From Neoechinorhynchus agilis (lineage: Eukaryota > Animalia > Acanthocephala), in the NCBI GenBank assembly GCA_051530055.1, contig CM121342.1, positions 3,533,489-3,597,488 on the forward strand: a stretch of 64,000 bases of DNA, given 5' to 3'. The notes under the pieces were generated by a model. The model did no database searches. It had not been told where the DNA came from and saw only the letters and a list, made by a program, of their open reading frames with translations. The position numbers and the translations under genes are program-made. Shown here one piece after another: positions 9,448-49,109 of this stretch (its first letter is position 1; every line of letters starts with the position of its first letter).

Positions 9448-9459
9448 TGTCAATTCTCT

Positions 9460-12648: not shown

Positions 12649-12723
12649 CTAAAAATACGTTTTTCACCTTAGGGTTTTAAGCTCGAGTGCGCGGGATCAC
12701 CAAACCCGAAGTTCACGGACCAA

Positions 12724-24374: not shown

Positions 24375-26663
24375 ATGCAAGGTAATCTATAATTCCCATT
24401 CGGTTTCCTTTTTGCAAATCATCATCATCATTAGAGAGCAAACAGTTGTGTTGTTCAACTCGACTAATTGTTGCATTTCTCGTGCTTATTGGAGCTTGCA
24501 TTCAATATTGTCAAAAGATCGATTTAAGTGTCAACATTTTATGTATGGTATCGGGCGGATACTCAAACGAAACCTCAGACACTCTTAAATGGGATAAAAG
24601 TATTCAAGGACTTTTATTGTCTTCCTTTTTCTGGGGTCTTTTGTTCTCGCAAGTTCTGAGTGGCATTCTTGCATCCAAATTCGGACCAAAATGGATCATG
24701 ATTGCAGCAATGACAATGAACGGATTCGCTATCCTTCTTTATCCAACTGCGGCGCGTTCTAGTTATAAGATATTCCTCGCTCTCCGACTGGTCGTAGGAT
24801 TCAGTGCGGTAAGTCAGGTTTCCTCAAAACTATAAACTAACGCTTTGGGATCTGTGTAGGGCGTTATTTTTCCTTGCATTACTCAGATATGGACGAAATG
24901 GGGACCGAAAATTGATCGAAGTACTCTAGTTGGAATATCGGCTTCAGGTTTGTGTAATCTCCAATCAAAAACTACTTGGGGTTTTAGAGTTACTCTAAGC
25001 TTCGTGAACATTTTGATTTTGTGCGTTGGCGAATCCTTTTTCCCGGTGTTTTCGTTACTCATTTATTTTAGAAATATTTCGCAAGGTTTCCCTTGCCTAT
25101 TCTGTCGCTATTGGAACTCGAATATTTAAAAACTTACAAGCAATAGAGACTGAAGAGGCAAGGAAAACCTTGCGAAATATTTCTTAAATAAATGAGTAAC
25201 GAAAACACCGGGGAAAGGATTCGCCAACGCACAATCAAATTCACCCCGAGGACAATGATATATGACATTTTGATTTGTGTTCTTATTTTTGTAATTTGCA
25301 ATTTTTTAGTGATTTTAATAACGGATTTGTGCTGAACAAAAATAGGCACTGAAATAAATCTAAAAGTCAATCAAATAAAGAAAAAAACGAACACTTTTCT
25401 GATTAAATGAGGTTATCATGAAAATATTTTAGGTGCCCATCTCGGCAGTGTAATAACTCTCCCCCTGGGAGGATTTCTTTGCTCTCGATTCGGCAATAAT
25501 GGATGGCCAATGCTATTCTATATCATCGGTGAGTTATGACAAATTGTTTTTCGGTGTGACTTTTAGTGGTGGCTATCAGGATCATCTTCGATTATTTGGG
25601 CGATGGCGTGGACATTTTATTTTTCGAATTCGCCTCGAAGACATCGATTCATCTCGGATAATGAACGAAGATACATTACAACGAACACTCTATTGAAAAA
25701 GAAACAGCGTAGTCGGCACAAAGTAATTTTATCTTCTTTTTTCTTCGTATACTGAAAATGTTTTATGGAGATTCCATGGATTAAAATCCTGACAAATCGC
25801 GCTTGTTGGGCTCAATTCGTTATCCATGCGTGTATGAGCTGGGGTTTTTATACTCTATTAACTTGTATGCCAATGTATATGGCTGAAGTTTTGAAGTTTA
25901 ATATTAAAACCGTTAGTGGGCAGCATTTAAAAATATCTAATCGAAAACCTTCTTTTTTTTCAAGAACGGAATTTTGTCTGCTGTTCCATTTTTTTCGGTC
26001 TGGATTACAACTGTACTGTCAGGACGGATTTCTGATGTATTAATTAAACGTAACTACATTTCGAGAACTCGACTAAGGAAAGCAGCTAATTTATTGGGTT
26101 TGTTGCAACTAGCTAATGAAATAGTGATTTTAAATCTCTTCTTTAGGTTCAGTAATACCAGCGACGTGCGTACTCGGTTTATGCCTAATAAACGCTTCCA
26201 CTAATTATATTGCCGTAATACTTCTCACGGTAGCAAACGCATTTTTGTAAGATTATTTAATCCAAATACGAAACTAAACTCTTTCTCGCAAAAGTGGAAT
26301 AGCGTTTGGTTCAGGATTTATGTGCGTTTGTAATGACCTCAGTTCAAGATTCGCTGGAGTGCTTTTTGGCATCTCTAATACATTTGCTACAATTCCTGGG
26401 ATAATATCTCCTTATTTCACTGCAATGTTTACATACGACGTTAGTGGCTCGAAGACTTTCCCAATGTATTCGACTAGTTTTAGAAATCCGCGGAGAGCTG
26501 GAGAATGGTATTCATTTTACTTGCTTCAATTTGGATTTTCGGCGGCTTAGAATTTTTGGCATTTGGATCAGGCGACGAACAGTTTGATTCTAAAGAGAAT
26601 TGTTCATACAATGAGGACGAAAACGTATCGGGAGAAAAGAGTAGTACACAAGACACAAACTAA
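24375..26663 (+). CDS. SLC17A: SLC17-family (sialin-like) MFS anion transporter, multi-exon
   Basis: Exons encode LKWDKSIQGLLLSSFFWG, ASKFGPKW, LRLVVG, WTKWGPKIDRSTLVGISASG, GSVITLPLGGFLC, GWPMLFY, IPWIKILTNRACWAQF, WGFYTLLTCMPMYM, NDLSSRFAGVLFGISNTFATIPG, WRMVF. Short GT-AG introns; the start exon (MQ) is inferred from phase. Confidence 0.92.
25019..25234. repeat. Palindrome 3 (intronic in SLC17): ~80-bp imperfect inverted arms with a hammerhead motif
   Basis: Right arm AGAGA-CTGAAGA(25150-25156)-G-GCAAGG-aaaa-CCTTGC-GAAA-TAT-T-TCTT; the left-arm mirror has a mutated core (CAGAATA). Confidence 0.9.
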
Positions 26664-27285: not shown

Positions 27286-28777
27286 CCGTAGTTGCGTCGA
27301 GGTGGTCAAGTGGACTAATGAATGCTCCGAGTCCCAGTTAAGGGTCAACGGGTTCGAATCCGTTACCGCCAATGGCCCATAACCAAAGGGGACGAAATGC
27401 CTCGTTGAAGGGAGGAAACTCACCAATGAGAGTCCCGCCTCCCCGGGAGGTATCTGAGAATTCGAAGGAATGCCCGTAGTTGCGTCGAGGTGGTCAAGTG
27501 GACTAATGAATGCTCCGAGTCCCAGTTAAGGGTCAAGTGGTTCGAATCCGTTACCGCCAATGGCCCATAACCAAAGGGGACGAAATGCCTCGTTGAAGGG
27601 AGGAAACTCACCAATGGGAGTCCCGCCTCCCCGGGAGGTATCTGAGAATTCGAAGGAATGCCCGTAGTTGCGTCGAGGTGGTCAAGTGGACTAATGAATG
27701 CTCCGAGTCCCAGTTAAGGGTCAAGTGGTTCGAATCCGTTACCGCCAATGGCCCATAACCAAAGGGGACGAAATGCCTCGTTGAAGGGAGGAAACTCACC
27801 AATGAGAGTCCCGCCTCCCCGGGAGGTATCTGAGAATTCGAAGGAATGCCCGTAGTTGCGTCGAGGTGGTCAAGTGGACTAATGAATGCTCCGAGTCCCA
27901 GTTAAGGGTCAAGTGGTTCGAATCCGTTACCGCCAATGGCCCATAACCAAAGGGGACGAAATGCCTCGTTGAAGGGAGGAAACTCACCAATGAGAGTCCC
28001 GCCTCCCCGGGAGGTATCTGAGAATTCGAAGGAATGCCCGTAGTTGCGTCGAGGTGGTCAAGTGGACTAATGAATGCTCCGAGTCCCAGTTAAGGGTCAA
28101 GTGGTTCGAATCCGTTACCGCCAATGGCCCATAACCAAAGGGGACGAAATGCCTCGTTGAAGGGAGGAAACTCACCAATGAGAGTCCCGCCTCCCCGGGA
28201 GGTATCTGAGAATTCGAAGGAATGCCCGTAGTTGCGTCGAGGTGGTCAAGTGGACTAATGAATGCTCCGAGTCCCAGTTAAGGGTCAAGTGGTTCGAATC
28301 CGTTACCGCCAATGGCCCATAACCAAAGGGGACGAAATGCCTCGTTGAAGGGAGGAAACTCACCAATGAGAGTCCCGCCTCCCCGGGAGGTATCTGAGAA
28401 TTCGAAGGAATGCCCGTAGTTGCGTCGAGGTGGTCAAGTGGACTAATGAATGCTCCGAGTCCCAGTTAAGGGCCAACGGGTTCGAATCCGTTACCGCCAA
28501 TGGCCCATAACCAAAGGGGACGAAATGCCTCGTTGAAGGGAGGAAACTCACCAATGAGAGTCCCGCCTCCCCGGGAGGTATCTGAGAATTCGAAGGAATG
28601 CCCGTAGTTGCGTCGAGGTGGTCAAGTGGACTAATGAATGCTCCGAGTCCCAGTTAAAGGGTCAAGTGGTTCGAATTCGTTACCGCCAATGGCCCATAAC
28701 CAAAGGGGACGAAATGCCTCGTTGAAGGGAGGAAACTCACCAATGCGAGTCCCGCCTCCCCGGGAGGTATCTGAGAA
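27286..28777 (+). repeat. Head-to-tail array of ~8 copies of the 5' 188 bp of a tRNA-derived SINE; the last copy continues into the SINE tail to ~28890
   Basis: ccgtagttgcgtcgaggtggtcaagtgg recurs every 188 bp (27286 to 28602), with A-box tggtcaagtgg and B-box ggttcgaatcc. The stretch 28790-28870 aligns with 3745-3825. Confidence 0.93.
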
Positions 28778-29922: not shown

Positions 29923-32900
29923 GGAAATGCATGAACCTAATTGCGGTGTTGAGTTTCCCCCGGAAATCGTAAGAAAATTAGAAACTAAACGCGTTCAACA
30001 AGGAGACCGAGTTCAACTGGCCTGTACAATTCGTAGTCAACAACCATTTCGCGTGGAATGGTATAAAGGTCATCAGAAATTGAGCGAGAACGACTCGTCG
30101 AGCAGGTATATCATTAGCGTTAAACAGAAAGCTGGGATTCATATGATGACCATTTTAAATGCTCAACGTTCTGATGAAGACTTATATAAATGCAAAGCTA
30201 TTGGAAATGAAGAGTCTGCAACTTCGTCTTGCTATTTACTTGTTGATTGTAAGTACACAATTGCCAGTTTTGTCTATAATTCCTGAAAATATGAATTCTT
30301 TGCCATTATTAAAATCTATTAAAAGAAAATGCTCGAAATTATTTGTTTTTATATGAGGAAATTCTTTAACATATTCGTCCGCGGTAAACATTCTTTACAT
30401 TTTAATCTTTATTGCTTCATTTAAAAGTACGTATTTTTCAGACTTAAAGTCGCCAATAATCTAGCCTTTTCCATATTGATAACCTTTAATTTGGATATCA
30501 TTCTCAATCCGACATAATATGATTTTTACGCCGATGCTAAAATTACGGGGACATAAATATGACAGCAAATAATGCCTTATAGATCATAGAATCTTACATT
30601 ATCGTCGTAGAATTAACACTCACTTCTTAATTAGACTTGTGTCGATTTTTTAGAGTGTGGCAAAACAAAGGATTAACAGTTAAAATTTTAATTCGTTCCC
30701 TTTAGTGGCCTTACAATACTTAAATCAGCTTGTAGTCATAATTTCAATGCGATCTATAAAGCGAATAAAACATTGCACTTCCATGCTAATCGGTGTTTTT
30801 TTGCTAATAAAATCTAAAGTTGAAACTAAATTTTTGTAAAGTGAACTCTAAATCGCTCTTAATCAAAAAGTTCATAATATATTTAATAGTCTTTTTAATG
30901 GATTTGAAATCGTTCAAAAAAACTTAGGTCCCTATAGAATTTACACTATTCTCGATGAAAAATGAATCATGAATTGTCTTTTTAGACTCCAAAATCATAT
31001 CGGCGTAAGTATTTTGATTACTTAGATTAATGCTAAAGATAAAATTCGAATAGAATTTATAAATTCAAGCTTTTACTCTTCATGAATTCAATTAACAACA
31101 ATTTATGATCTTTTGTAAAGGAATTTCTCGAGATATTGAATGCTAACTTCATCGAATATAAGTTCCACATTTATTGTAGGACTTGGCGAAGAAAAATTCT
31201 AATTTATTAACTTTAATTTTCGGCCTGCTCGCTGGCCTTCTTCAGAATTGCTTGTAAGTTTTAAAATATGTGAGAAGCAATTCTGAAGAAGGCCAGCGAG
31301 CAGGCCGAAAATTAAAGTTAATAAATAAATTACAATTTTTCTTCGCCAAGTCCTACGCGAACTTCATCAAAAAATTAATCTAAAACAAAGTATTAAATAA
31401 AAATTATAAAATTTACTTGCATGTAGCCTTGTATCATAACTTATTTTTGCTCGCTTTCATCTTTTATTTCCACAATTAAAAGAATAATATTTTGAAGTTA
31501 AAAACGATTTCAAGGGCAACCTTTTTTGTTAAAATTTGCGAAAATAAACCTAAAATATTTTTACATCATGGCAATGGTTGATTTAGTCTTAACTTTTGTT
31601 TTATCCGTGAAATCACATTTTAGATAACATAATCCGTATGCAATAATTTCTCATTTTCGGAAATTACACTGCTTAAATGCACCATTGTAGAGTTTTCGTT
31701 ACCGCTCTGGAGCATTAAATTCAATTTTACGCATATTTGCCGTGTCCTGGTGTCTAATTAATATCTAATTTCGACATTGATATTTAGCACTTACAAAACC
31801 TCAACGAGCTAATAGTCTCTCACCAACCAGACAAAAGATGGCACTTAAACCAAGCGGTCAGAAAAGAGCTCGTACTCCCCAAATATTGGACAAGGTTACT
31901 GAATGCGAGGAAGTACAAGAAACGTCGGATATTCAGTCCAAATATTCGTCAAGTCTGAACGAAAACTTCCTTGGACATCCTAAAGTCAGCGAAAATGGAT
32001 TTGGAAATAAATTTATCATTCCAGAGGAGGTAAGTTCTTGATTATCTTCTCCAAATAATTTTTAAGGCTTGGTCATATTTATTAAAGACTGTATTAGATT
32101 CTCACTTTAAATTAATTGTAATAAAACAAATATTAACGAAGTAAAATCTTCTGGTCACTCCTTTAATCTCATTCTCAAAACTAATATGATAATAATAGTT
32201 TCTGGTTGCGAAATCCAAAAAAGTTGAGCGCAACAACGTGATGAAGACTATATAATGCTAAAGTCGAAATTTCAGAATACGAAACTCACCTACGAATATT
32301 TCGCTTCTAATTTTAAGTTTTTATGGATGCATTCGTCTGCTGAGTGTGGCCTTTTCTGTTAAAAATTGGAAATCATTTTGAGATATATTGAGAAAAAAAA
32401 TTGCGAGATATTCGGGCACATTATCGATAAGGCTAAGGTAACTAAACAAAAGAAGCAATGATGGCTCGCTAGTGCATCAACCATGGGGCCGGGAAATTAT
32501 AATGGTCCAACAGATCAACGATTATTCAAGTGCGTTCTTTTCTCTGAAAAAATCTTGTATTTTTAAAATAGAATTTTGCGTTCTTTAAAAAAAATCACGT
32601 TGTTCATCGCTGAACGAAACAGTAGAAGGCGATTAATTTTAGAACTAAAATTCATTTGCGAATTCGTTTTTAAAATGGAACTTTAAGAAGCTTTAATATC
32701 GTCATATATATTCGTGTAGATTTGCAAGCGTTCAAAAACAAATTTTAAGAATTGCATAATTCCAAAATTTCCTTTAGATCGATGACGTCTATTCCATAAT
32801 TGTATCCGTGCCGGATTTGCCAGCCGAAGATCCTTCCCAAAAGCAGCTTTCACCCAAGGATGGTTTCTCCCTTGAACCTGGCATTGATACATGTGAGCGA

Positions 32901-35900
32901 CAAGGTAATTGAACGCACTTTTTCAAAAAACAATGAAGCGCATTGTATCACAGAATCAGATAGCATTATGGATATGTCTGGAACTGGCTTCAATCAAAGG
33001 TTTAGTATACACCCTACGTTTTCAAAACATTCGGTTGGTGGGCCTCGAACTCCATTTGCCACAAAACCCACAACGACCGGCTGTAACCCATCTCCTTTAT
33101 GTCGCATGATAAGAGCAGCTCAATGAGGTATTTTTCCAAATGCTTGTGTACGATAGGAGTTATGCAATCGAGAGACCTCCCCTGAGTAAGATGGAGTGGG
33201 CCAACTATTATCGGGCGTCTTAATATTTACTATATATCCCTACATAAGTCTTTTTATTAACACTTTGGAGGATTCAAAACGAGTAATGCCAGCTTACAAC
33301 TTTTCCCAGCGAATTTACCGATCGACAGCCACAATTTTTACTTATAGGCAGCCAAAGGAGAACGTTCATTGGGAAAACTACAGAAGTTCTTACAATGTCA
33401 GGGTTCATGGCGGATCCGTGAGCGGTTAGTTAGTTTCGAATTTTCCTTCTTTTCACGTTATTAGTCGTAGAGGAAAGCGAACAAAACGATAATACGTTTT
33501 CAAGCAATGAGGAAATGTATTTCAAAGATAAATTGTTCAATGGAGACCATTGTATTATCCTGAAGGTCGTTACAAACTTTTATGCAAGCTGGTAAACTAA
33601 AGGATTTTGTTTTTCGTCTTCATGTTTCAATGATTTTTTAATTATTCTCAGACATTGTTGTTCGATTGCATGTAGAAATAAATTAATCTTAAGTTTGGTT
33701 CAGACATTTTGTGTTTTCGTATAAATATTATGCAAAATGCACTAGAGATTAGACAGACCAGAAGACTATAAATCAAAATGGCGACAAAGTAAATATTTTT
33801 AGGGAGCTAATAAATCAAAGGATTAGCCTCAGTGGCTTTTGTTTGCCTGGCTAGTATGTCGACATGTCGGAGCACTGATTATTCTGAATCACCAAAATCT
33901 TTTGTTGTTTATCAGCAAACACAAGAATAAACCAAAATCTCAGTGCAGAAACAGTTTTAAGACAGCTTTCAAATGTTTCATAAATGCTAACAAAAGATTT
34001 ATCTAACTTGCGCAGGATGTGCACTTTTAGAATAAAAATATCCGCATTTTCTACAAATTGATCGAAACATAATCTTCGTTAGTGTAATGATGAGAATTCG
34101 ACTTTAAAAAACAAACAATATTGTTCAAGTGTGAACGTAATTGAAATAAAATGTAAAACTGAAAGCCACCGATATACTCACTTGTCACACATTAATAATT
34201 ATTAATGTGAGTTTTTACTTGCTTAAGTGAAATTTATTTACAAAAAGAGTTTGAACGTAAGGTTCCAAATTTTCTACGTACCAGCAATCCATTTAACACT
34301 CGGCGAATATCCCAGAGGGTCAAAATCGATTTTCGCTACCCGATTTTGACATTGCATGGAAGGTCTTAATCGTTTTGAGTTGTCTAAAGTTTTCTACATT
34401 TAGCGATTTGGAACAGCAAATAAACATTGTAAATTACAAGATTATCTCTTAAATCACTTTTTATCAGATGACAACCATAAATCGTGCAGCCGAGAAATCT
34501 GCTTTGGCCATTAAAGATTCACCTACCCAGTCCGTGTTAATGAAATCTCTACGATTCCCTACTTCTCACGCATTTCTCTTGCTCGAGAGAGGTTGTCATT
34601 TCGGTCAAAAATTTGGCAAGAATTTTACAGCCGGATGTCTTTCCTCACGCCAACCTTCCTCCTTTTCTCTCATCCGGACTATGGACTGTCCTTGGCGGAT
34701 CCTCACAAAAAGGTTTTGAAAAGTTTCAAATTTTGATAAGTCATCATGAGAATATCCTTCTAGCTGCTAAGCCAGACAGTAGTTACCTTTTGACGGATTC
34801 CATTAACCTATAGAATGTCTCAAATGATTAGATGACAAAAAAAAGACGTTGGTAGAATAACTCCCGCAGCGTACAATCAAAAAGTTGCTCCTTTAAGTCG
34901 TATTGTCGGAATGTAAACTCTTTCAACAAAGTAAAAATAACATTGTTCTCTCTTGACAATGCGGACACTTTATATAAGTTTCAATAATAATCTGACCTTT
35001 AGAGTGCTATCATAGGCACTATTATTTACCTAATGGCCCACTTGTGTATTCTTTGAACAGCTCCCTTTGCACTGTAGAGCAGCTTCTCGGAAACACCTAC
35101 CGGGAATGTCCTTGATTTTTACTACTTTCAGCAGTTAAGGTGAAATTTAAATCAAATTCTCGAGAGTTTAGTCGAAATCGATATTTGTACAGTGTTTCTC
35201 GCCAGGGAAACATGAAACCGTGTTCGCCTAAAGGCTCAAAATTTGATATTCTTCTTATCTATTAATTATCAAACAAAAATCCGATACAGGTTTATTTGAT
35301 TTCATAGACCAAATTAACTTATATAAGAATGATTGATCTTCTTGTGCGTTGTCGATGTTATATATATCATCTGGGATGGATTTTCAAGCATGAATATCCA
35401 TTGCAAATGGTTTCTGTTTCTCTTTGTAACCTTCCATTGATCCGAAGGTTAATGCTACACTTGCGGAAAAACAAATAAGGCGTGAAAATCCCGAAAAACA
35501 TTTTAGATTATTAATGATCGTCGATTTTGATATGTGTTGTTCAAAGGCGCAACTTACAAAATATGTAGAAATTAAAGGTTGAATAAAGATAAAATCCATG
35601 AGTATGTGGCGATGGGGAAAAATTATATATCAAAGAATCACTTTAATTGAAATATTTCGTCCAATCTCACTGGACTTGTTCAGTCAACAGATCTAATCGA
35701 TTAGATTTATTTACAATAATTGACTGAAGAAGTCCAGTGAGATTGGACGAAATATTTCAATTAAAGTGATTCTTTGATATATAATTTCCTCCCACTTCCA
35801 CGTATTAAAAGTTGAGAGTTTTGTAACCAATTCTTATTAAGGTCTTCTACGAAAACGGTCCACGAGTTTCTATGATCACTTCTTAAAATTATATTCCTGC

Positions 35901-38900
35901 TTATTTTTTGTACAGCATCGTTGTATCCAGGCGGTGGTATTGAACATTTAATAGCATTTCTAAAGCGACTTTGCTGTAGTTTTTATAAAGTTAAGCGAGA
36001 ACGATATTGGTCCTGGTTGCAAACATTTTTTTGATGTTGAACAATGCAGTCAAATGGAACATCACTTTAAACTCGTCTAGGCTAAAGATAATGCTCGACC
36101 TTTAAAAATTCATACAGTAAATTCGCTTGTTTATTAAAAAGTCAATAATCTCATTTTTATGTAGTCAAAATGAGGTCGGCATTCTGAGGAAACCGCATGA
36201 TTAAAATTTAAATCCCAATAACTCGCTTTTTTTCACGCTGGAAACTTTTTTAATATGAATTCATTTGTGTCTTATCGATCCGTCCCGTTGATTGCAACTC
36301 CATTGATCACGGTGTTTTTTTGTGACTTTGAACGAGGTTTAAAAAGCAAATTAATAAATCTACCGAGCAATTGTATTAAATAGTCAAAAGCCATCGACTG
36401 TACTGGGATTGAGAAAACGAACATTCGATTGTTCCAAAATTCGAGAATGGTTTCCGTCAATTTCATAAAACATGCGATCTCATTAGAGTTGTTAGATATA
36501 ATTTTAAGCCGAATGATTCTTCTATTTGTTATAATAAGGTTGATTGCAAAAAAAACATAAACCCGTACGTTCAAATTAAAAGAATTCTGAGAATGTAGAA
36601 ATCCCAATCGCTATAATGTCATTATCTTAAGATAAGCGAATTGCGTTTGATCGTGAACAGTTCCGACCCACGGAATACGCCCAATAAAAAAAGAAGGAAT
36701 TATGCTGATGACTATGCCACACTTCAGCTGGATGCCATCTCGCGGTCTATTATAGTCAGGTGGTTCAGAATGTGGCTAAATTGATATGCTTAATGGTCAT
36801 CAGAGTCTCTATATAGATTCTAAAGGCCTAAGAAGATCCACGCATTCGTCTCAGTTAATCTACGATTGTGTAAATGTTAGTTTTTCTTGGCTTAAAGGTT
36901 GCGCCAAATTTATGGCATGTTTTTTTGCCCGTGTGTATGTGAATGGGGTTCTTTTACCTGAGCGGAAAAAGGAGCAGCAAACGACACATCCTCGCTGTTA
37001 GAGGAGATTCTCCCACTACTGACGGTGATGGATGCGCCGTGAAAATATAATCATAGACATTGCATACGGTGGAAAGTATCTTTTTCCCTCCAGAAAAGGA
37101 AAGACGAATCCCCTCAGCGACACATGTTACCGTGTGGAGTTATCCTGCAACTGTAACGGGGACTAGACACCAGCAGAGAAGATGAAAATGTGCTTGCAGA
37201 AAAAACTGCCTTAGTTTTTGCTTAGGTCCGTCAAATTTCTTACACCGACGAACGTTAGAGCTGTCAGCTTCTTTACAACTGCTACCGAAAATTCGATGCA
37301 TGCCTTTTAGATAGAAGAAGAGAAAGGACCAAGACGCATCTCCGTAATTCCACAGATATTATCATCTTTATTGCCTCGAAGTAGGCCGATTGCTTCGTCG
37401 ATAAACTTACCACCAACAACGCTTGTTTAGAATTCACTAATCAGCCTGTCGATAGCACGGTCGCTTGAACTATCAAGACCGGATACCGTTTAATCTATAA
37501 AGGAAATTTAAGAGATGAGTGCGTTCAGTGCAGGAAGCTCTACCGAGGTCAGTCATCGATCTTCACTTTTTTTCAAGACATTTTTTGAAAGTCCACTCAG
37601 CTTAACCTAAAAACAGTTCTGTCGATTTAATTTCCCATCTCTTATATGTCTCGATAATTATTGAGGACTGGACGATTGTGTTACAAGCAGGTGTATCCAT
37701 TCAGACAGTACAGGAGACTAAATAGACATTCAAGCAATTTATCTTTAGCCGTCGTTACCCCCAAAAGTCCTCAAACATCCATTCTTGAAGCACTAGGATT
37801 TGCAGCTGGGCCGGATCATATAACGATTAATCTCATTTTAAGACTTGTCGATCATAGACTCAACCTAACGACCATTTCGATCGACTATAAGCACCTAAAT
37901 TGATAAGATTAACATTTTGATATTTAGAATTTTTAAGTTTTTTGACCAATAAGCCTTTTTTGCTAGGTTTCCTAAATTTAGGGAAACTTATTTAATACGA
38001 ACAAGCTATATCTTATGATTTTATCACAGTTTAATTTGTCCATTTTTGACTCAGTCGATCAAGTAAAACTTTTTGCAGTCTTCAATGCCAAATTAATACG
38101 AACAAACTATATCTTATGATTTTATCACGGTTTAATTTGTCCATTTTTGACTCAGTCGATCAAGTAAAACTTTTTGCAGTCTTCAATGCCAAATTAATAC
38201 GAACAAACTATATCTTATGATTTTATCACAGTTTAATTTGTCCATTTTTGACTCAGTCGATCAAGTAAAACTTTTTGCAGTCTTCAATGCCAAATTAATC
38301 GACAGATAATGTTTAGGCAATTTAATTTTTAAACTAAAATGTCTTGGAGCGTTATTTTAGTGTTCCTCCAAAGAACGACGAAAAATGCTCGAAATTGTTT
38401 CTAAATTTTATTTTTATTGGCTAGGGCAAACTCCATTTTCAGTACCTGATCGTTCAAGAGCCACTTGTAAATCGCTGCTGAAATAAAGCTTCAATTTTTA
38501 GAACGAAGAAATATATCACTCAGTATGCGAATACGCTGCGCGTGATACAGACGAGATTTCCTTAAGCGAGGATGAACCTGTTAATATTCTCGACCAAGGT
38601 GATGCGGCATACTATCTTGTAAGAAGTCTGAAACAAAAAGCGAAGCGTATTGGATGGGTTCCGATTTGTATACTCGAGAAACGTATTCAGTCAACTACCG
38701 TGAGTTTCATGCATAATTTAACAGTTACAAAAAATGCAAAGTTTAAAGGGAGATCGAAGACTTTCTCTTGAAAGTTCCTTAACTGGCTTGAGTGGAACGG
38801 ATATTTCGAATCGAGAAAGGGCGACAATTGAAGATCTTTTTGAAGGTGAACGAGATTATGTTGGAGAACTTCAATACTTCACCGATACTATATCTACGGC

Positions 38901-41900
38901 AATCGACTCCGATCCAAATTGTCCCACAAAAGTAAAACAATGTAAAATATTGATATTATCAACTACCAAGGAACTTTTGAAGTTTCATAGAACGTAAGTA
39001 CACTTGAGAAACATCTCTAATTGAATCAAATATAAATAGATACTTATTAAACGATTTTTATCATTCAAATCACAATTCACAAAGCATCGCGCGTGCGTTC
39101 TTAACACATTCGGACCAGTTCCACCTTTATGTCAGCTATTTTTCGGATATGAACTTATGCGAGACGACATTTGACAAAAACCCGGAAATCGTTAATTATA
39201 TCGACGTAAGATGATTTGATTTTGATAATGTTTGACATGTACAAAACAGAATGCTCTTCTAAGACATGGAGGAACTCCAGAAAAACCGCTTATGTATTAT
39301 TTAACTAGACCGATAGAAAGATTAGAAGTCTATCGAGAATTTCTAAAGGCTAGTTCATCTTTAATTTCTTTAAAAACCTCACCATTTAATTTTTTAGGAC
39401 ATCGTGAGATTCACAGGACGTCTAAATTCCGATGTAAAGAGTATAGTTTGGGCATTTGGTGCAATCAATAATATTTTCAATCAAATACGATTCAGGGATG
39501 TAATCGCTACAATATCCTGCCTGCCACCTGAATGGCGTTCTTGGGGCGATGTGGAGCGGCAGGTTAGATTCTGATTTGTATAATTTCCTAAAAATGATTT
39601 TTTTAGGATAATGTAGAAATTCTTGAAAATAATAGTTGGCTACGAAAAGAAATTTTAATTTTTAAAGGTCATATTGTCATTTGCGACGTAGTTCAATTCA
39701 AATGGGATGAAAATACAAAGCTTAATTATGACCGCGCAATGCCGGTAGGCTTATACGTTTTTTCGTTGATGATTTGCCACAAGATTAATAGTTGGTCGAA
39801 ATAAGATTTATCCGGGACAATTTTCCTGACCAACGAGAATTTCAACTGTCAACAAAAGACCTGAATGTTCGATTTCGAGCGATAAAACAGTTTACTAGGG
39901 CGGCAATTCTACGAAGACTTCGGTTAAACCTAAATGCACTTGGACTAGAAATCAACGGCGTTGGCATTCAGAGCGTTTTGCCAATTCATAACGTGGAGAA
40001 CATTACAACAAGCAAACGTAAGTCTTAAACCCACCTTTTTTTCAAACTCATAGTTATCGGGGATTCCACACCATTTCAATCAAAATCCGAAATCTTGATA
40101 TAGAAGTCAAATAATTCTCAGATTCCAACATAAATTTAACAATACATCCAAGGAATTTATAAAAGTTCCGATTGGAATTTAGGAACATCATTATCCTCCA
40201 TTGCCCCGAGGTTCCAGCATTCCCTTCTGGATCGCTGATTCTCTGATAAAAATTAGTTGGCTGCACTCTTTGGTGTTATTGTGACTTACACTTTTTCCAA
40301 CTTTGGTTAAAAATTCTGCTTGGTCTGACGGCACCATTTCTCTAAATGGTTAGAGAGGTTATAAAAAGAAAATCGACGGATCGAGGCATTGGTATGAATT
40401 AAGCTTAAGCAAATACATTTAAGGAATTTATAAAAGTTCTGACGTGAATTTAGGAACATCTTTATCTTCCATTGCCTCGAGGTTCCAGCATTTGAATTTA
40501 GGAACATCTTTATCTTCCATTGCCTCGAGGTTCCAGCATTCCCCTTCTGGATCGCTGATTCTCTGATAAAAATTTGGTGTTATTGCGACCTACACTTTTC
40601 CAACTTTGGTCAAAAATTCTGCTTGATCCGACGGCACCAATTCTCCAAATGGTTAGAGAGGTTGGAAAAAGAAAATCTTCGGATCGAGGCATTGGTATGA
40701 ATTAAGCTTAAGCAAATACATTTAAGGAATTTATGAAAGTTCTGACTTGAATTTAGGAACATCTTTATCCTCCATTGCGATCCAGCATTCCCCTTCTGAA
40801 TCGCTGATTCTCTGATAAAAATTTGGTGTTATTGTGACTACACTTTTTCCAACTTTCGTTAAAAATTCTGCTTGGTCCGACGGCACCATTCTCTAAATGG
40901 TTAGAGAGGTTAAAAAGAAAATCCGGATCGAGGCATTGGTATGAATTAAGCTTAAGCAAATACATTTAAGGAATTTATAAAAGTTCTGACGTGAATTTGG
41001 AACATTTTATCTCCATTGCCTCGAGGTTCCAGCATTCCCCTTTCTGGATCGCTGATTCTCTGATAAAAATTTGGTGTTATTGCGACCTACACTTTTCCAA
41101 CTTTGGTTAAAAATTCTGCTCGGTCCGACGGCACCAATTCTCTAAATGGTTAGAGAGGTTGGAAAAGGAAAATCTTCGGATCGAGGCATTGGTATGAATT
41201 AAGCTTAAGCAAATACATTTAAGGAATTTATAAAAGTTCTGACGTGAATTTAGGAACATCTTTATCCTCCATTGCCCGAGGTTCCAGCATTCCCTTCTGG
41301 ATCGCTGATTCTCTGATAAAAATTTGGTGTTATTGCGACTTACACTTTTCCAACTTTGAAAATTCTGCGTCCGACGGCACCAATTTCTAAATGGTTAGAG
41401 AGGTTGGAAAAGAAAATCTTCGGACGAGGCATTGTATGAATTGCTTAAGCAAATACATGAATTTATAAAAGTTCTGACGTGAATTTAGGAACATCTTTAT
41501 CTTCCATTGCCTCGAGGTTCCAGCATTCCCCTTTCTGGATCGCTGATTCTCTGATAAAAATTTGGTGTTATTGCGACCTACACTTTTCCAACTTTGGTTA
41601 AAAATTCTGCTCGGTCCGACGGCACCAATTCTCTAAATGGTTAGAGAGGTTGGAAAAAGAAAATCTTCGGATCGAGGCATTGGTATGAATTAAGCTTAAG
41701 CAAATACATTTAAGGAATTTATAAAAGTTCTGACGTGAATTTAGGAACATCTTTATCTTCCATTGCCTCGAGGTTCCAGCATTCCCCTTTCTGGATCGCT
41801 GATTCTCTGATAAAAATTTGGTGTTATTGCGACCTACACTTTTCCAACTTTGGTTAAAAATTCTGCTCGGTCCGACGGCACCAATTCTCTAAATGGTTAG

Positions 41901-44900
41901 AGAGGTTGGAAAAAGAAAATCGGCGGATCGAGGCATTGGTATGAATTAAGCTTAAGCAAATACATTTAAGGAATTTATAAAAGTTCTGACGTGAATTTAG
42001 GAACATCTTTATCTTCCATTGCCTCGAGGTTCCAGCATTCCCCTTTCTGGATCGCTGATTCTCTGATAAAATTTGGTGTTATTGCGACCTACACTTTTCC
42101 AACTTTGGTTAAAAATTCTGCTTGGTCCGACGGCACCAATTCTCTAAATGGTTAGAGAGGTTGGAAAAAGAAAATCTTCGGATCGAGGCATTGGTATGAA
42201 TTAAGCTTAAGCAAATACATTTAAGGAATTTATAAAAGTTCTGACGTGAATTTAGGAACATCTTTATCTTCCATTGCGATCCAGCATTCCCCTTCTGAAT
42301 CGCTGATTCTCTGATAAAAATTTGGTGTTATTGCGACCTACACTTTTCCAACTTTGGTTAAAAATTCTGCTCGGTCCGACGGCACCAATTCTCTAAATGG
42401 TTAGAGAGGTTGGAAAAAGAAAATCGGCGGATCGAGGCATTGGTATGAATTAAGCTTAAGCAAATACATTTAAGGAATTTATAAAAGTTCTGACGTGAAT
42501 TTAGGAACATCTTTATCTTCCATTGCCTCGAGGTTCCAGCATTCCCCTTTCTGGATCGCTGATTCTCTGATAAAAATTTGGTGTTATTGCGACCTACACT
42601 TTTCCAACTTTGGTTAAAAATTCTGCTCGGTCCGACGGCACCAATTCTCTAAATGGTTAGAGAGGTTGGAAAAAGAAAATCGGCGGATCGAGGCATTGGT
42701 ATGAATTAAGCTTAAGCAAATACATTTAAGGAATTTATAAAAGTTCTGACTTGAATTTAGGAACATCTTTATCTTCCATTGCCTCGAGGTTCCAGCATTC
42801 CCCTTTCTGGATCGCTGATTCTCTGATAAAAATTAGTTGGCCGCACTCTTTGGTGTTATTGCGACCTACACTTTTTCCAACTTTCGTTAAAAATTCTGCT
42901 CGGTCCGACGGCACCAATTCTCTAAATGGTTAGAGAGGTTGGAAAAAGAAAATCGGCGGATCGAGGCATTGGTATGAATTAAGCTTAAGCAAATACATTT
43001 AAGGAATTTATAAAAGTTCTGACTTGAATTTAGGAACATCTTTATCCTCCATTGCCTCGAGGTTCCAGCATTCCCCTTTCTGGATCGCTGATTCTCTGAT
43101 CAAAATTAGTTGGCTGCACTCTTTGGTGTTATTGCGACCTACACTTTTCCAACTTTGGTTAAAAATTCTGCTTGGTCTGACGGCACCAATTCTCTTAATG
43201 GCTAGAGAGGTTGGAAAATAGAGAGCGAACGATTACAAACCGATTTCATTTAGTCCATTTTGGCAAATGTATAACCTAAAAGTGAAATTTTGAATATTGT
43301 TCAGTCTATTCTAGTGGCTGAATAAAACTTGTTATGTTGCCATTTTTTAATTTCTTATAGCAATCTGCAAAGAGAAACAAAATCTCATTATTTTATACAC
43401 CCGCAAATGAGAACAAGCACCCTTTAAAGCCCTCGAATTGTTACATTTCAAATCTAAATAAATGAGAAGGAAATTAAGGGAAACGAAGCTGTTTTATGCA
43501 AAACTCTATCGATACATAGATTTTAAAACCTACAAGAAGAAAACTATTTTCAATCTAATATTCAAATGCCTATAGCGTCTTTTTTGTAGAGCGAATCCGT
43601 CGAATACTTCCAATTTCGAATCTAGGTTTGGTCGAAGAGTACAGAGTCGTCCATAGTTCATCTACGGAGGACATTCACAGGTCAACGACAACTTTTACAC
43701 AAGGAAAGCGGCGTAATGTGAATTTTGCCGACGAAGTGAGTTGTTTTGTGATCTAAGAATCATAGCGAAAATGATTGTTGAAGTTGAGCCTGGGATCACA
43801 GAAGATGCAAAGATTACAACCGTCCATTGTAGACTTTCCAACAAAGGATATAACAGGATATGCCACAGACTGTAAGTCATTCCGTTCTCCGTTTCTCGTC
43901 AAAAATCTCACGTCAGTTGTGAATTTGATTTCGTTCTAATGGTTAGAACCGTAACGTCTGCAACCATTGTAGCCATGTAAGAGAATATCGCGAAACTTTG
44001 CGAATAGTGCGCCAAAATAGTGTTTCATAAAACCCCATTAAAGAACTTTTAATCATCAACTATTGACCCCTTCTTCTTTTTTAGCAGCCATTTATAAGAG
44101 TTTATGTAGATCGGAAGGTCCGGTACTGAAGGCGATGAATAAATCAGTCCGATTTGCACCACTAAGGAAACCAATGTTTAGTAAAAAATTGAGCGATGTT
44201 CACGCATTAGGTATGTGGTGTCGAGCAGTTCCAACTTAAAAAAGCTGTTATTTCTAGAGGGTACTGAGGTCGTTTTGGACTGCCTTGCAGAATGTGACTA
44301 TGATACGTCCTTCGTTTGGTTGCATAATAATCAACCGATTTCGAACAGAATCGAAAATGGGCAGGATGCCAATAAGTTTTGGCTAAGAATCAATGTTTGT
44401 TTCAATTAAAGTCGCAAATTGTATAAAATCTTGATTTAGAGAGTCACAATGCAGGACGCGGGCACGTATTCAATAAAAGTATCATGCAATGGAGGTTCAA
44501 TAAGTTGCAGTTGCCGGTTGCACATTACGGAAGGTACGTCTGCATGGGGATTGTTTAATTTCACTTTTAACAATATTGAATTTTTCGTGTATCCATCAAC
44601 GGGCTTTAATCGGAAAATGCTTTCCAGCTACATTTTATTGAGAACGCACAAAGGTACCCGTGGTACAATTACCAATTGCAACTTTATTCAAAATTATACA
44701 AAGAACTATATTTTAGATCGAATAAAGGATTGCTCTTGTCGTCCTATTCCAACTTGGATAATCTTATTTTGTAAAAGAACAGAAAATCGAGTAAAATGAC
44801 AGTGTAGTCGTTTTGGTTTCTAGAGGAGTCTAAATCGCTTATTTTTACCTGTCCAGAAATTGAGAAACATCTTTATTAGAGAAAAATTGATTCCCAAGCA

Positions 44901-46140: not shown

Positions 46141-46834
46141 GTAAGAAGCGAATAATTGCAGGAGGAGGGGTAGTTCCTAAAGTGTGATTGATCTCCGATG
46201 TGAAGGTGTCGGGTGTGTAAAGAATCATCATCAAGGAATCCAAAATTAGGACGTCAATGATTGTCTCTCCTATAAGTCTAAAGCGCTTTTAATGGGAAAT
46301 TATTGCCGGAAACGGGGTGTGTAATAGCGTCGTGATTCGCTTCTGGATCGCCGTTAAGATCATTAGAAGATGGGATCGCCTGCTTTTTTAACACTAAAAT
46401 CATTGAATTTAAAGAAGTTCTGTATTTTTTACCAGGGCGAGATAAAAATACCTACTTTTTCTTAGTTTTGCTACCCCTTGGATTTAAAAAGTCGCATAAT
46501 TCTGACATTTCCCCAATGTTTATCATTGCTTGCAAGCTTTACACGAACTCGCAAAAAAAACTTAGAAGCAATGACAAACCTTGATAACTTCGAAATTATC
46601 AAATGTGAAGTATCAGATATAAATTAGTGAATTTAAATCATGAATAAAAATAGTTATATTTTTGTTCTTAAATAGTAGAACTAAAATATTTTTTCTTTAT
46701 CTCACCCCTCATCATCAAAACAAACTATGAACATTATCTTTACAATTTTAATTATTTCCTTATATATTTTCTAAACTCTTTTTTTCATTTGGTTTCCTTT
46801 GGATTTAAAAATTCACTGATTTATTTCCTTCCGA

Positions 46835-48495
46835 CATTTCCATAATATTTGACATTATAAATATCAAAAAGAGGTATATTTTCCATATTTTGAAAAGAAA
46901 GCCTTTTTTCTAATTTCATTCTGATTTAAAATTTCAATACTAACTTTTTTCTTAGTTTTGCTACCCGTTTCCGATAATTTACGTTCGATAATTCCGATAT
47001 TTCCCCAATATTTGACATTATAAATATCAAAAAGAGGTATATTTTCCATATTTTGAAACGAAAGCCTTTTTTTCCAATTTCATTCTGATTTAGAATTTCA
47101 ATATTAACTTTTTTCTTAGTTTTGCTACCCGTTTCCGATAATTTACGTTCGACAAATTCCGATATTTATCCAATATTTGACATTATAAATATCAAAAAGA
47201 GGTATATTTTCCATATTTTGAAAAGAAAGCCTTTTTTTCCAATTTCATTCTGATTTAAATTTTCAATACTAACTTTTTTCTTAGTTTTCCCACCCGTTTC
47301 CGATAACTTACGTTCGATAATTCCGATATTTATCCAATATTTGACATTATAAATATCAAAAAGAGGTATATTTTCCATATTTTGAAAAGAAAGCCTTTTT
47401 TCTAATTTCATTCTGATTTAGAATTTCAATATTAACTTTTTTTCTTAGTTTTGCTACCCGTTTCCGATAATTTACGTTCGATAATTCCGATATTTCCCCA
47501 ATATTTGACATTATAAATATCAAAAAGAGGTATATTTTCTATATTTTGAAAAGAAAGCCTTTTTTCTAATTTCATTCTGATTTAGAATTTCAATACTAAT
47601 TTTTTTCTTAGTTTTGCTACCCGTTTCCGATAATTTACGTTCGATAATTCCGATATTTCCCCAATATTTGACATTATAAATATCAAAAAGAGGTATATTT
47701 TCCATATTTTGAAAAGAAAGCCTTTTTTCCAATTTCATTCTGATTTAAAATTTCAATACTAACTTTTTTCTTAGTTTTGCTACCCGTTTCCGATAATTTA
47801 CGTTCGACAAATTCCGATATTTCCCCAATATTTGACATTATAAATATAAAAAAAGAGGTATATTTTCCATATTTTGAAAAGAAAGCCTTTTTTCCAATTT
47901 CATTCTGATTTAGAATTTCAATACTAACTTTTTTCTTAGTTTTCCCACCCGTTTCCGATAATTTACGTTCGACAAATTCCGATATTTCCCCAATATTTGA
48001 CATTATAAATATAAAAAAGAGGTATATTTTCCATATTTTGAAAAGAAAGCCTTTTTTCTAATTTCATTCTGATTTAGAATTTCAATACTAACTTTTTTTC
48101 TTAGTTTTGCTACCCGTTTCCGATAATTTACGTTCGATAATTCCGATATTTCCCCAATATTTGACATTATAAATATCAAAAAGAGGTATATTTTCCATAT
48201 TTTGAAAAGAAAGCCTTTTTTCCAATTTCATTCTGATTTAGAATTTCAATACTAACTTTTTTTCTTAGTTTTGCTACCCGTTTCCGATAATTTACGTTCG
48301 ACAAATTCCGATATTTCCCCAATATTTGACATTATAAATATAAAAAAAGAGGTATATTTTCCATATTTTGAAAAGAAAGCCTTTTTTTCCAATTTCATTC
48401 TGATTTAGAATTTCAATACTAACTTTTTTCTTAGTTTTGCTACCCGTTTCCGATAATTTACGTTCGACAAATTCGGATATTTCCCCAATATTTGT
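46835..48495. repeat. Array of ~10 copies of a ~164-bp AT-rich unit, flanked by a related direct copy (~46410-46520) and an inverted copy (~48525-48620)
   Basis: gacattataaat recurs at 46851, 47014, 47179, 47343 and onward. tttttcttagttttgc in the unit is reverse-complemented as gcaaaactaagaaaaa near 48535. Confidence 0.92.
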
Positions 48496-49109
48496 CATTT
48501 CTTGTAAGATTTTAAATATGAGAAATCCTGGATGGCAAAACTAAGAAAAAGAAAGTATCTTTTTTCCCATGAAGATTAAAATTTCACTATTAATTTCCTT
48601 AGCTGACACTTTTGCAATTGATGTGTTTTTCAAAGAAGAAAAACAAAATTCTAAAAAAGGCAATAATTTCCCGACGTTAAGAAAATTTAACGATAAAGAT
48701 CGATGATATTAGAATAAAGAAGAATTGATTACCAATATTCCATTATTTAAGAAGATTCAATTTGAAATTGTTCGTGAAGTCTCAAACAACTCGGTTAATG
48801 GATAAAATAGATTATACCGACCAGAAGTTGCTTTTGAACGAATTGAACGCATTGCAACAACAACAACAACAACGAAGGCTCTTAATCCGGTACAAATCCT
48901 TTATTTACATCACAAATCTTAGAAGAAGCAAGAAGAACGCATTTTCTTAAGTAGCTGAGATGTTTGCAGCGTCTTTGTTAGGATCTTTTTTTTGGGAGAG
49001 CTTAAATTATTTTTTTTTCGAAACGTATTTTGTTTCGTTTTTCGATAGGAAAATTGTTTTTAATTCGAACAAAGTCTCACATATTTGTAATGGCAGTTTT
49101 TCAGACAGG

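Follow-up and report, generated by a model that had tools for sequence, protein, structure and literature searches.

Minimal hammerhead ribozymes (min-HHRs) of metazoan Penelope-like elements (PLEs) were described as type I motifs built on a CUGANGA and GAAA core, in which one nucleotide 5' of stem II (between A9 and G10.1) stays unpaired and G10.1-C11.1 is invariant; helix II spans 4-7 bp, helix I is short and variable (2-7 bp), and helix III is made from a palindromic tetranucleotide (Cervera & de la Pena, 2014; PMC4209133). They were found as many divergent copies per genome, in families with high variability and compensatory changes, mostly solo or in opposite-strand pairs ~100-700 bp apart outside full elements; the monomer was inactive and dimer activity was low (PMC4209133). 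Dimer cleavage by min-HHRs is credited to Lunse et al., as cited in PMC6765202. Craig et al. (2021; PMC8557442) described PLE insertions in which a 5'-truncated copy lies inverted and one end bears a 30-40-bp tail. The protein of the Anolis Poseidon element (PAc) cleaves and extends both strands in vitro (Frangieh et al., 2024; PMC11167929). Its reverse transcription starts internally, at an AC-rich stem-loop ~85-92 nt 3' of the hammerhead cut site, and the stretch separating two start sites forms the tail; the PAc ribozyme depends on protein and loses its activity upon a G8C change (PMC11167929).

Newt satellite 2, Schistosoma Sm-alpha and non-LTR retrozymes (PMC7229834) share with the motif described here the core, a short palindromic helix III and the logic of working as a dimer. 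These canonical type I ribozymes differ in having a 6-bp helix I, a 4-bp helix II and loop-loop tertiary contacts, and in being direct tandem repeats with an Rfam Hammerhead_1 match, neither of which applies to the present motif. In non-LTR retrozymes, units of ~170-400 bp follow one another directly in tandem and each contains a canonical type I hammerhead (Cervera & de la Pena, 2020), an arrangement absent here. A base inserted between A9 and G10.1 is likewise tolerated in viroid hammerheads (De la Pena & Flores, 2001, as cited in PMC4209133). Those have a stable helix III, whereas the insertion here is a family-wide purine. Amniote HH9 and HH10 (De la Pena & Garcia-Robles, 2010, as cited in PMC4209133) are also sense-strand hammerheads within an intron (here a putative one). 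These are single-copy, orthologously conserved and monomer-stable, whereas the present locus appears to be a dispersed TE copy, predicted to be incompetent as a monomer and masked by an antisense arm.

The DNA analyzed (the window) was a 64-kb stretch of Neoechinorhynchus agilis contig CM121342.1 (GCA_051530055.1). A first-pass annotation had quoted a hammerhead string with a perfect 6-bp stem I and intact core on the plus strand, and an antisense mirror carrying one core substitution. The string was read exactly so in the window sequence, which also bore out the stem and core; the mirror core is CUGAACA, the plus strand having g at 35678 where a perfect palindrome needs c (G8->C). The features of this locus were as follows.

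35718-35762, plus strand: minimal type I hammerhead, core intact
35718-35723 with 35757-35762, plus strand: stem I, 5' AAUUGA with 3' UCAAUU
35724-35730, plus strand: core C3-A9, CUGAAGA
35731, plus strand: extra A between A9 and helix II
35732-35736 with 35744-35748, plus strand: helix II, GUCCA/UGGAC, loop GUGAGAU
35749-35752, plus strand: G12-A15.1, GAAA
35753-35755, plus strand: UAU (U16.1 at 35755), followed by U17 at 35756
35756/35757, plus strand: scissile bond predicted by hammerhead numbering
35639-35695, minus strand: hammerhead copy with dead core CUGAACA (G8->C at 35678), covariance model (CM) match 87.4 bits
35571-35582, no strand: left TSD copy ATTAAAGGTTGA, 11/12 match to 35804-35815
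35583-35602, minus strand: one-sided 20-nt tail between left TSD copy and left arm
35603-35698, minus strand: left arm, 5'-truncated element copy, 3' end outward (left)
35691-35706, no strand: centre of twin, perfect 16-nt palindrome, AGATCTAATC/GATTAGAT-type junction (ATCTAATCGATTAGAT)
35699-35804, plus strand: right arm, 5'-truncated element copy, 3' end outward (right)
35804-35815, no strand: right TSD copy ATTAAAAGTTGA, adjoining the right arm end

The plus-strand copy has the general hammerhead core, with C3-A9, G12-A14, an A15.1-U16.1 pair and an H17 that is not G, and its CM match was 89.3 bits. Folded as an isolated 57-mer, it formed stem I and stem II (-12.8 kcal/mol, z = -3.4). Helix III consists of the single pair A35752-U35755 around a 2-nt loop, and the AUAU self-duplex was calculated at ~ -2.8 kcal/mol. 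A stable helix III closing the three-way junction is, by these calculations, absent in the monomer and would be possible only as a dimer.

The two hammerhead copies lie in an inverted repeat with 85-nt arms (35603-35687 / 35720-35804; 91% complementary), whose inner 68 nt differ by a single base, the G8->C position. Relative to the right arm, the left arm has a ~10-nt deletion just 5' of stem I; the final 25 nt of the right arm are C-rich (9 C, 1 G). The TSD was identified as the highest-scoring local match between the left and right flanks (2.8% of shuffles equaled its score), and the tail lies inside it and outside the inverted repeat. The sequence organization of the locus is that of two 5'-truncated copies inverted head-to-head, a ~230-bp double insertion. 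If so, an empty orthologous site in a related species would show a single ATTAAARGTTGA.

Ten motif copies were found at six loci in the 64-kb window, ~1 per ~6 kb. The locus at 35571-35815 is hereafter C, A, B and D are the other twins, E and F are solo copies, and _L and _R denote left and right arms.

4831-5036, no strand: family member A, twin; inner arms 4888-4949 / 4965-5026, 100% identical
4886-4941 (minus strand) and 4973-5028 (plus strand): A hammerheads, both cores intact, helix II GAUCC/GGAUC
4817-4830 / 5037-5050: A TSD AAAATACTTAAATC, perfect 14-nt; ~29-nt tail at left
31157-31356, no strand: family member B, twin, in the same putative intron as locus C; arms 31176-31253 / 31275-31356
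31209-31256 (minus strand) and 31273-31319 (plus strand): B hammerheads, helix II GGCC/GGCC, helix III AAUU
31142-31156 / 31357-31371: B TSD, 13/15 match; 19-nt tail at left
25019-25264, no strand: family member D, twin; arms 25019-25113 / 25141-25234
25142-25194, plus strand: D right hammerhead, intact, helix II GCAAGG/CCUUGC
25064-25115, minus strand: D left hammerhead, core decayed (CAGAAUA)
25008-25019 / 25265-25276: D TSD ACATTTTGATTT, 0.2% of shuffles equal its score; 30-nt tail at right
12602-12651, minus strand: family member E, solo, core intact (CUGAUGA-G), helix II GCGGG/CUCGC
3327-3383, minus strand: family member F, solo, core and stem I (GAAUGA/UCAUUU) intact, helix II decayed

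All four twins are head-to-head, with the minus copy left, the plus copy right and the 3' ends outward. Inverted partners of E and F were looked for and none was found. A full core is present in 7/10 copies; C_L, D_L and F have broken cores or helices.

Enrichment was assessed with a descriptor comprising CTGANGA, 0-1 nt, a helix II of at least 4 bp, and GAAA. It gave 7 matches in the window, representing 5 independent sequences, whereas 200 dinucleotide shuffles averaged 0.245 and never exceeded 3. Three features undemanded by the descriptor were present in 7/7 matches: A9 is followed by one additional purine, G10.1 pairs with C11.1, and UAU or AUU comes directly after GAAA, which yields a self-complementary AUAU or AAUU. 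The extra purine is A in families A, B and C and G in D and E; G10.1-C11.1 is GC in 10/10 copies; and A15.1 with the next 3 nt is palindromic in all intact copies (AUAU in A, C, D and E; AAUU in B). A CM built from the two arms of locus C alone recovered the other 8 copies. After retraining on all ten, members scored at least 40.6 bits and noise at most 16.6 bits, and a second-round CM search of the window found no further copies.

Covariation was scored on a CM-guided alignment, a MAFFT alignment having misplaced helix II. Helix II, of which five different sequences occur among the 10 copies, was 100% paired with changes on both sides in 4/5 pairs, and its covariation score was 0.428 compared with 0.099 shuffled and at most 0.106 with the partner slid. 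The alignment was fitted to the structure, and twin arms are not independent; the ten copies represent ~six independent lineages. Helix I was 91% paired, with compensatory changes in 3/7 pairs. Rfam hammerhead models gave no match at the gathering score in the window, or at E<=10 in 801 nt or in 65 nt. The bare CTGANGA..GAAA pattern was not enriched (13 against 8.95 expected), a signal emerging only once helix II was required. The last two results speak for a chance resemblance to the hammerhead consensus in AT-rich DNA. That reading is refuted by the descriptor enrichment, the helix II covariation and the clean gap in CM scores, together with the unrequired features common to all matches, and its probability is negligible. 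Judged on these sequence features, the candidate at 35718-35762 is a genuine member of the hammerhead-ribozyme family.

The TSDs of the four twins measure 14 nt (perfect), 15 nt (13/15), 12 nt (11/12) and 12-16 nt, with 60-79% A+T; those of B and C are individually marginal (4.2% and 2.8% of shuffles, respectively, equaled their scores). An extra segment separates TSD from arm on one side only in 4/4 twins (29-30 nt in A and D, 19-20 nt in B and C). Comparison of the four tails found short shared words only and no convincing homology. Loci are homologous to one another only across the ribozyme, over ~20 nt on its 5' side and in a 3' block, ACCGGGG...TTCRCCAA, present in D, E, F and partly B. 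No direct repeat was found at locus C, and the tandem arrays of the window coincide with no hammerhead copy. Separately, the tandem arrays and a tRNA scan of the window showed no relation to the family.

The unit is an inverted repeat almost throughout and has a direct repeat at its flanks, and it was therefore also considered as a foldback or MITE-type DNA transposon with a fortuitous hammerhead-like string in its arms. Sub-threshold Rfam matches to hairpin-miRNA families derived from such elements point the same way. Variable TSD length and an asymmetric tail inside the TSD are not produced by DNA transposases. Here TSD length varies (12, 14, 15, ~16 nt) rather than being fixed, and 19-30 nt separate one TSD copy from the arm. 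Between loci the ribozyme and its immediate flanks are conserved and the termini are not, and the compensatory helix II changes indicate selection on RNA structure. A DNA transposon is accordingly a highly improbable source.

The combination of twin, TSD and one-sided tail is, judging by sequence organization, the known PLE insertion signature. We regard 35583-35804 as probably (roughly 80%) the product of one old insertion, derived from the 3'-terminal ~100 nt of a PLE or from a short PLE-mobilised element and comprising two head-to-head 5'-truncated copies, each with a minimal type I hammerhead. The window family shares with PLE min-HHRs (PMC4209133) the type I topology and core, the unpaired nucleotide and invariant G10.1-C11.1, the dimensions of helices I and II, the palindromic-tetranucleotide helix III, the divergent families with compensatory changes, and the occurrence as solo copies or opposite-strand pairs outside full elements. 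It differs in its spacing, with 53-67 nt between the C3s of pairs whose cores are both intact and near-perfect palindromes, compared with the ~100-700 bp known. It differs further in that no full PLE was found in the window. With PLE insertions (PMC8557442, PMC11167929) it shares the head-to-head inverted copies, a tail-like segment confined to one end, TSDs of variable length at AT-rich target sites, C/A-rich arm 3' ends and a ribozyme tens of nucleotides upstream of the unit 3' end. Known elements have pseudo-LTRs, whereas both copies here are extremely truncated, with neither an ORF nor a direct pseudo-LTR, and the tails are 19-30 nt rather than the published 30-40 bp. Some copies of the PLE class are expected in repeats that flank an element encoding an RT and a GIY-YIG endonuclease. 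Among 20 window ORFs scanned, none combined RT and GIY-YIG, and the sole RVT_1 match was a tandemly repeated fragment at 16384-16890; the proposed link to an autonomous PLE is therefore one of signatures.

By analogy with published PLE biochemistry, a GIY-YIG endonuclease/RT would nick both strands of an AT-rich target and reverse-transcribe the RNA 3' region from both nicks, starting internally, at C/A-rich sequence ~45-75 nt 3' of the ribozyme. One arm begun at a distal site would give the tail, and joining of the two cDNAs in the middle would give the palindrome. In the parent element, the hammerhead would work only when two sense (tandem) copies pair through the palindromic AUAU to form helix III, probably with protein assistance, and would process multimeric element transcripts.

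Arms end 8-36 nt upstream of C3 in every case, a pattern not predicted if a ~3-kb element were simply truncated at random from its 5' end. The twins are also similar in size (~175-245 bp), and a leader block AAAACUUACAAGCAAU is conserved in A, B_L and D_R. These observations would fit a dedicated ultra-short non-autonomous element, mobilised in trans by PLE proteins and integrating regularly as a palindrome. A 25-36-nt leader, the min-HHR and a 45-75-nt RT-entry tail would together make up its template of ~110-150 nt, and symmetric priming on both target strands would produce the palindrome. Non-autonomous PLE derivatives are known, for Chlamys (PMC8557442) and for retrozymes (bioRxiv 10.64898/2026.07.22.740005). 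The sample, however, is four twins and two solo copies only, and the shorter arms end variously (8, 12, 15 and 19 nt), as truncation would give, so that such an element is possible but rather doubtful. It is a refinement of the PLE-insertion explanation, not an alternative to it.

The host context was evaluated from Pfam matches to flanking ORFs, on which the intron assignment rests. A strong I-set exon was found at 29927-30283 on the plus strand (5e-17), followed on the same strand by a weak RhoGEF start at ~38.7 kb and weak Ig fragments at 44.4 and 45.9 kb. The ORF domain scan found no domain-bearing ORF between the I-set exon and these downstream domains, and a search through the Ig exon for an annotated product containing the 29.9-kb exon retrieved none. 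The first-pass placement of the motif on the sense strand of an intron of an obscurin-like gene is plausible but provisional.

It had further been proposed that cleavage after 35756 could affect the host pre-mRNA unless masked by the upstream arm. The masking caveat proved apt. In any transcript crossing locus C the complementary left arm comes first and would pair into a ~85-bp hairpin. This hairpin was calculated at -125.4 kcal/mol (z = -20.6) and the best ribozyme-competent fold at -71.4 (ddG +54), with an ensemble probability of the hammerhead pairs at locus C of 0 to eight decimals. Only one further sense copy lies in this putative gene, at 31283 on the plus strand; it carries AAUU rather than AUAU, and dimer helix III could therefore not form between the two. 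Because the monomer has a 1-bp helix III and an antisense left arm, the plus-strand ribozyme, although it keeps every catalytic residue, is predicted to be effectively inert in place and is unlikely to cleave.

The view that an intronic hammerhead is functional here, with self-cleavage of obscurin-like pre-mRNA after 35756 modulating host expression, would draw on the intact core on the strand of the Ig exon, on the stem I and stem II of the isolated 57-mer, and on the amniote intronic hammerheads as cited in PMC4209133. Set against these are the 1-bp helix III of a class reported inactive as a monomer (PMC4209133), the absence of a compatible sense partner in the same putative gene, the 54 kcal/mol advantage of the left-arm hairpin with no probability left to the hammerhead pairs, and the origin of the locus as a TE insertion; a dispersed TE family with decaying copies (C_L, D_L, F) argues against host-level selection. 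Cleavage of the host pre-mRNA is for these reasons judged very unlikely.

As modeled, the most likely effect of locus C on host RNA is a long intronic double-stranded hairpin, not self-cleavage. The near-perfect ~85 bp and the stability given above would also suit a hairpin co-opted as a small-RNA source (hairpin-RNA or miRNA-like), whatever its origin, which is compatible with a PLE insertion. Sub-threshold matches to long-hairpin miRNA families were obtained for MIR860 (57.4 bits, gathering threshold 89), MIR2934 (49.2/100), MIR4372 (46.3/100) and MIR2118 (39.7/85). All Rfam matches, however, fall below gathering, involve unrelated plant and animal families and reflect hairpin shape only; these and the sub-threshold snoRNA matches were rejected as hairpin-shape artefacts. 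The same structure recurs at three other loci as a mere consequence of the insertion mode, and co-option is improbable.

For annotation, hammerhead matches of this kind are to be read as probable PLE fragments, not host regulatory ribozymes. Because Rfam models miss them, standard pipelines would overlook them even at a density of one per ~6 kb. For PLE biology, four compact twins with TSD and one-sided tail would be clean natural examples of the inverted-copy and tail signature, and they agree with the recent in-vitro finding that both target strands are nicked and extended. A dedicated short element, if real, would supply genomic evidence for two-strand extension, so far seen in vitro only, and its ribozyme would automatically be masked by its own antisense copy; such self-masking could explain the tolerance of sense-strand copies inside introns. 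For the host, the family would amount to a set of long, perfectly paired intronic hairpins, possible substrates of dsRNA pathways, rather than to RNA self-cleavage.

The hammerhead string proposed in the first-pass annotation was matched exactly on the + strand at 35718-35762, with the following parts read from the sequence:
35718-35723 (+), stem I 5' strand, AAUUGA
35724-35730 (+), core, CUGAAGA
35731 (+), additional A after the core
35732-35748 (+), helix II, GUCCA-gugagau-UGGAC
35749-35752 (+), GAAA
35753-35755 (+), UAU
35756 (+), U17
35757-35762 (+), stem I 3' strand, UCAAUU
By hammerhead numbering, the predicted scissile bond would be 35756/35757. The plus-strand copy retains all catalytic residues. 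The mirror with one core substitution, also noted at first pass, was read on the minus strand as CUGAACA (G8->C; g at 35678 on the + strand). The two copies form an inverted repeat (locus C) with 85-nt arms (35603-35687 / 35720-35804; 91% complementary) and a perfect 16-nt palindrome centre (35691-35706); over their inner 68 nt, the arms differ solely at the G8 position.

Bare boxes (CTGANGA...GAAA) were not enriched in the window (13 matches vs 8.95 expected), and an obvious helix II, differing in sequence, was present in 5 of the 13. A stricter descriptor (core, 0-1 additional nt, helix II of at least 4 bp, GAAA) gave 7 matches, or 5 independent sequences, against a mean of 0.245 and a maximum of 3 in dinucleotide-preserving shuffles (n = 200). 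All 7 shared traits not demanded by the descriptor: A9 is followed by exactly one additional purine, helix II is closed by G-C on the core side, and UAU or AUU comes directly after GAAA, which makes A15.1 plus these three bases AUAU or AAUU, both self-complementary. A covariance model trained solely on the two arms of locus C and run over the window with filters off retrieved ten copies at six loci:
Locus A: 4886-4941 (-), 4973-5023 (+)
Locus B: 31209-31256 (-), 31273-31319 (+)
Locus C: 35639-35695 (-), 35712-35768 (+)
Locus D: 25064-25115 (-), 25142-25194 (+)
Locus E: 12602-12651 (-)
Locus F: 3327-3383 (-)
Retraining on all ten copies added none in the window and left a clean gap between the weakest member (40.6 bits) and the best noise match (16.6 bits). 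In the model-guided alignment of the ten copies, helix II was paired in 100% of cells, 4 of its 5 pairs carried both-sided changes, and G10.1-C11.1 was invariant. The covariation score, from an alignment itself fitted to the structure, was 0.428 vs 0.099 shuffled (0/500 shuffles reaching 0.428) and at most 0.106 with the 3' partner slid out of register; the arms of one twin are not independent, so the ten copies represent about six independent lineages. The motif is genuine and part of a family; chance resemblance to a hammerhead was excluded.

Loci A-D are head-to-head twins (4/6 loci), minus copy left and plus copy right; E and F are solo copies. Each twin is flanked by a direct repeat (target-site duplication, TSD), one copy of which is set off from the arm by a short additional segment (tail):
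Twin A: TSD AAAATACTTAAATC, 4817-4830 / 5037-5050, perfect over 14 nt (0/500 shuffles as good); tail ~29 nt, left side
Twin B: TSD 31142-31156 / 31357-31371, 13/15 match; tail 19 nt, left side
Twin C: TSD ATTAAAGGTTGA (35571-35582) / ATTAAAAGTTGA (35804-35815), 11/12 match; tail 20 nt, left side
Twin D: TSD ACATTTTGATTT, 25008-25019 / 25265-25276, 0.2% of shuffles as good; tail 30 nt, right side
Similarity between loci was detectable by BLAST in the ribozyme alone. Alignment revealed a conserved leader (AAAACTTACAAGCAAT) directly 5' of stem I in A, the left arm of B and the right arm of D, and a 3' block (ACCGGGG...TTCRCCAA) common to D, E and F. C is abundant in the outermost 25 nt of the arms, and G is scarce there in A-C. 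Arms within a twin (35603-35804, 25019-25234) are 98-100% identical, and TSD copies 87-100%. The rare arm differences concentrate in the catalytic core, in just one copy per twin (left arm of C, G8->C; left arm of D, U4->A and G8->U). The palindrome arms may have evolved in concert or, the numbers being small, the pattern may be due to chance.

Minimal hammerheads of metazoan Penelope-like elements (PLEs) were defined by Cervera and de la Pena (PMC4209133). In these hammerheads, a nucleotide 5' of stem II is left unpaired, the G10.1-C11.1 pair is conserved, positions 15.x-16.x are palindromic, and helix II is longer and helix I shorter; they are extremely variable within one genome, with compensatory changes, and the majority lie outside full elements, some as opposite-strand pairs (PMC4209133). 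PLE insertions are highly 5'-truncated; often a second copy, inverted and likewise 5'-truncated, adjoins their 5' end, and a tail of 30-40 bp is confined to one end (Craig et al., PMC8557442). All sequence-level features tested at locus C fitted this description except tail length and tail homology: the tails of B and C are 19-20 nt vs 30-40 bp (PMC8557442), and homology among the tails of the four twins was sought but not demonstrable. A defining trait of PLE hammerheads is that some copies sit in the repeats on either side of an element encoding RT and GIY-YIG; no ORF of this type was found among the 20 scanned in the window. As judged from these features, locus C is an inverted twin insertion carrying a minimal hammerhead of the PLE type. 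Inverted arms would also be present in a MITE or foldback DNA transposon, but such an element does not fit, since TSD length varies between twins, the tail is asymmetric and the covariation is of RNA type. Within the PLE reading, the arm ends (every twin arm ends 8-36 nt upstream of C3), the similar twin sizes (4831-5036, 25019-25264, 31157-31356, 35583-35804) and the shared leader are not accounted for by random 5' truncation of an element of kb size; the arm ends and sizes would fit a possible but less probable refinement, in which the twins go back to the very short template of a dedicated non-autonomous element.

The isolated 57-mer of the plus-strand copy folded into stems I and II (-12.8 kcal/mol) without a stable helix III, and the AUAU self-duplex was put at about -2.8 kcal/mol. 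The putative host gene contains just one further sense copy (B, 31283), whose AAUU cannot pair with AUAU. A transcript across locus C folded to a hairpin (-125.4 kcal/mol, z = -20.6), vs -71.4 kcal/mol for the best fold retaining the hammerhead stems; to eight decimals, the ensemble probability of the hammerhead pairs was 0. Because stable helix III and a complementary sense partner are lacking and the hairpin is stronger, the ribozyme is most likely unable to act. Cleavage of the host pre-mRNA after 35756, as suggested at first pass, is thus unlikely, and masking by the upstream arm, raised there as a caveat, is the expected outcome. A host-regulatory intronic ribozyme is unlikely on the same grounds and because family copies decay freely (cores broken in the left arms of C and D; helix II lost in F). 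Co-option of the locus C hairpin for small RNAs is possible but finds no support in Rfam, where every miRNA match was below threshold.

Domain matches and ORFs placed the loci as follows:
5271-5798 (+), V-ATPase-G-like ORF, twin A ~240 bp upstream
11317-12174 (-), Kelch-repeat ORF
24446-24835 and 25765-26550 (+), MFS-transporter exons, twin D between them
29927-30283 (+), I-set exon, strong match
near 38.7 kb (+), RhoGEF start, weak match
44.4 and 45.9 kb (+), Ig fragments, weak matches
49110-50342 (+), RagC/D GTPase gene, intronless, 410 aa
50468-58456 (+), uninterrupted Ig-domain ORF, 2662 aa
58619-59992 (+), 457-aa ORF
Locus C has the Ig exon to its left and the RhoGEF-like ORF to its right. 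The ORF domain scan detected no coding sequence around it, so an intronic, sense-strand position in a putative Ig/RhoGEF-like gene is plausible. The RagC/D gene has Ig/RhoGEF-like exons on its left (29.9-46.2 kb) and the giant Ig ORF on its right. These may form one UNC-89/obscurin-like gene that hosts the RagC/D gene within an intron and for which the assembly's gene call begins only at 50468. The 2662-aa and 457-aa ORFs are parts of a called 5132-residue product with an unusually long exon. The window belongs to chromosome CM121342.1 (assembly GCA_051530055.1) of an animal without a close relative in the protein collection searched, where the best RagC matches were ~55% identical.

Other repeats were also recorded. 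A 377-bp unit (x7, 99% identity; 14096-16747) carries a ~125-aa ORF, extended in the final copy to 169 aa (16384-16890) with a weak RVT_1 (reverse transcriptase) match, and resembles a retroelement fragment amplified in tandem. A 188-bp unit (x7.9, 99% identity; 27286-28777) with a tRNA B-box-like GGTTCGAATCC, in which ARAGORN called no tRNA, may represent a tRNA-derived SINE that was amplified in tandem. Five further arrays did not overlap the hammerhead copies:
1-1182, period 269 bp
19340-19845, period 135/267 bp (inside overlapping repetitive ORFs on both strands)
37992-38299, period 101 bp
40493-43218, period 256 bp
46829-48499, period 164/329 bp
ORFs 9430-10602 (+) and 18333-18809 (+) resembled LINE-type retrotransposon fragments by eye and had no Pfam match at E<=0.01.

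In work on the purified Anolis Poseidon protein, both strands of AT-rich target sites were nicked and extended by it. Reverse transcription began at internal positions, namely a pair of neighbouring sites in an AC-rich stem-loop ~85-92 nt 3' of the point of hammerhead cleavage, and the stretch separating these start sites is the tail (Frangieh et al., PMC11167929). Motif, family, covariation, twin, TSD and tail were observed at locus C, and for its insertion history we infer a comparable course. A PLE ribonucleoprotein would have nicked both strands at an AT-rich site and copied the 3' ~100 nt of the element RNA from both nicks; one copy would have begun at the distal start site, giving the tail, and joining of the two cDNAs in the middle would have given the palindrome. 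In the parent element, the ribozyme would act when two sense copies pair via AUAU, building helix III, probably with protein assistance. PLE minimal hammerheads are inactive in vitro as monomers and weakly active as dimers (PMC4209133), and the Poseidon ribozyme depends on protein and loses activity with G8C (PMC11167929). Rfam misses PLE-type minimal hammerheads, which gives these copies annotation value, and the twins are tidy natural examples of the PLE signature of inverted copy plus tail.
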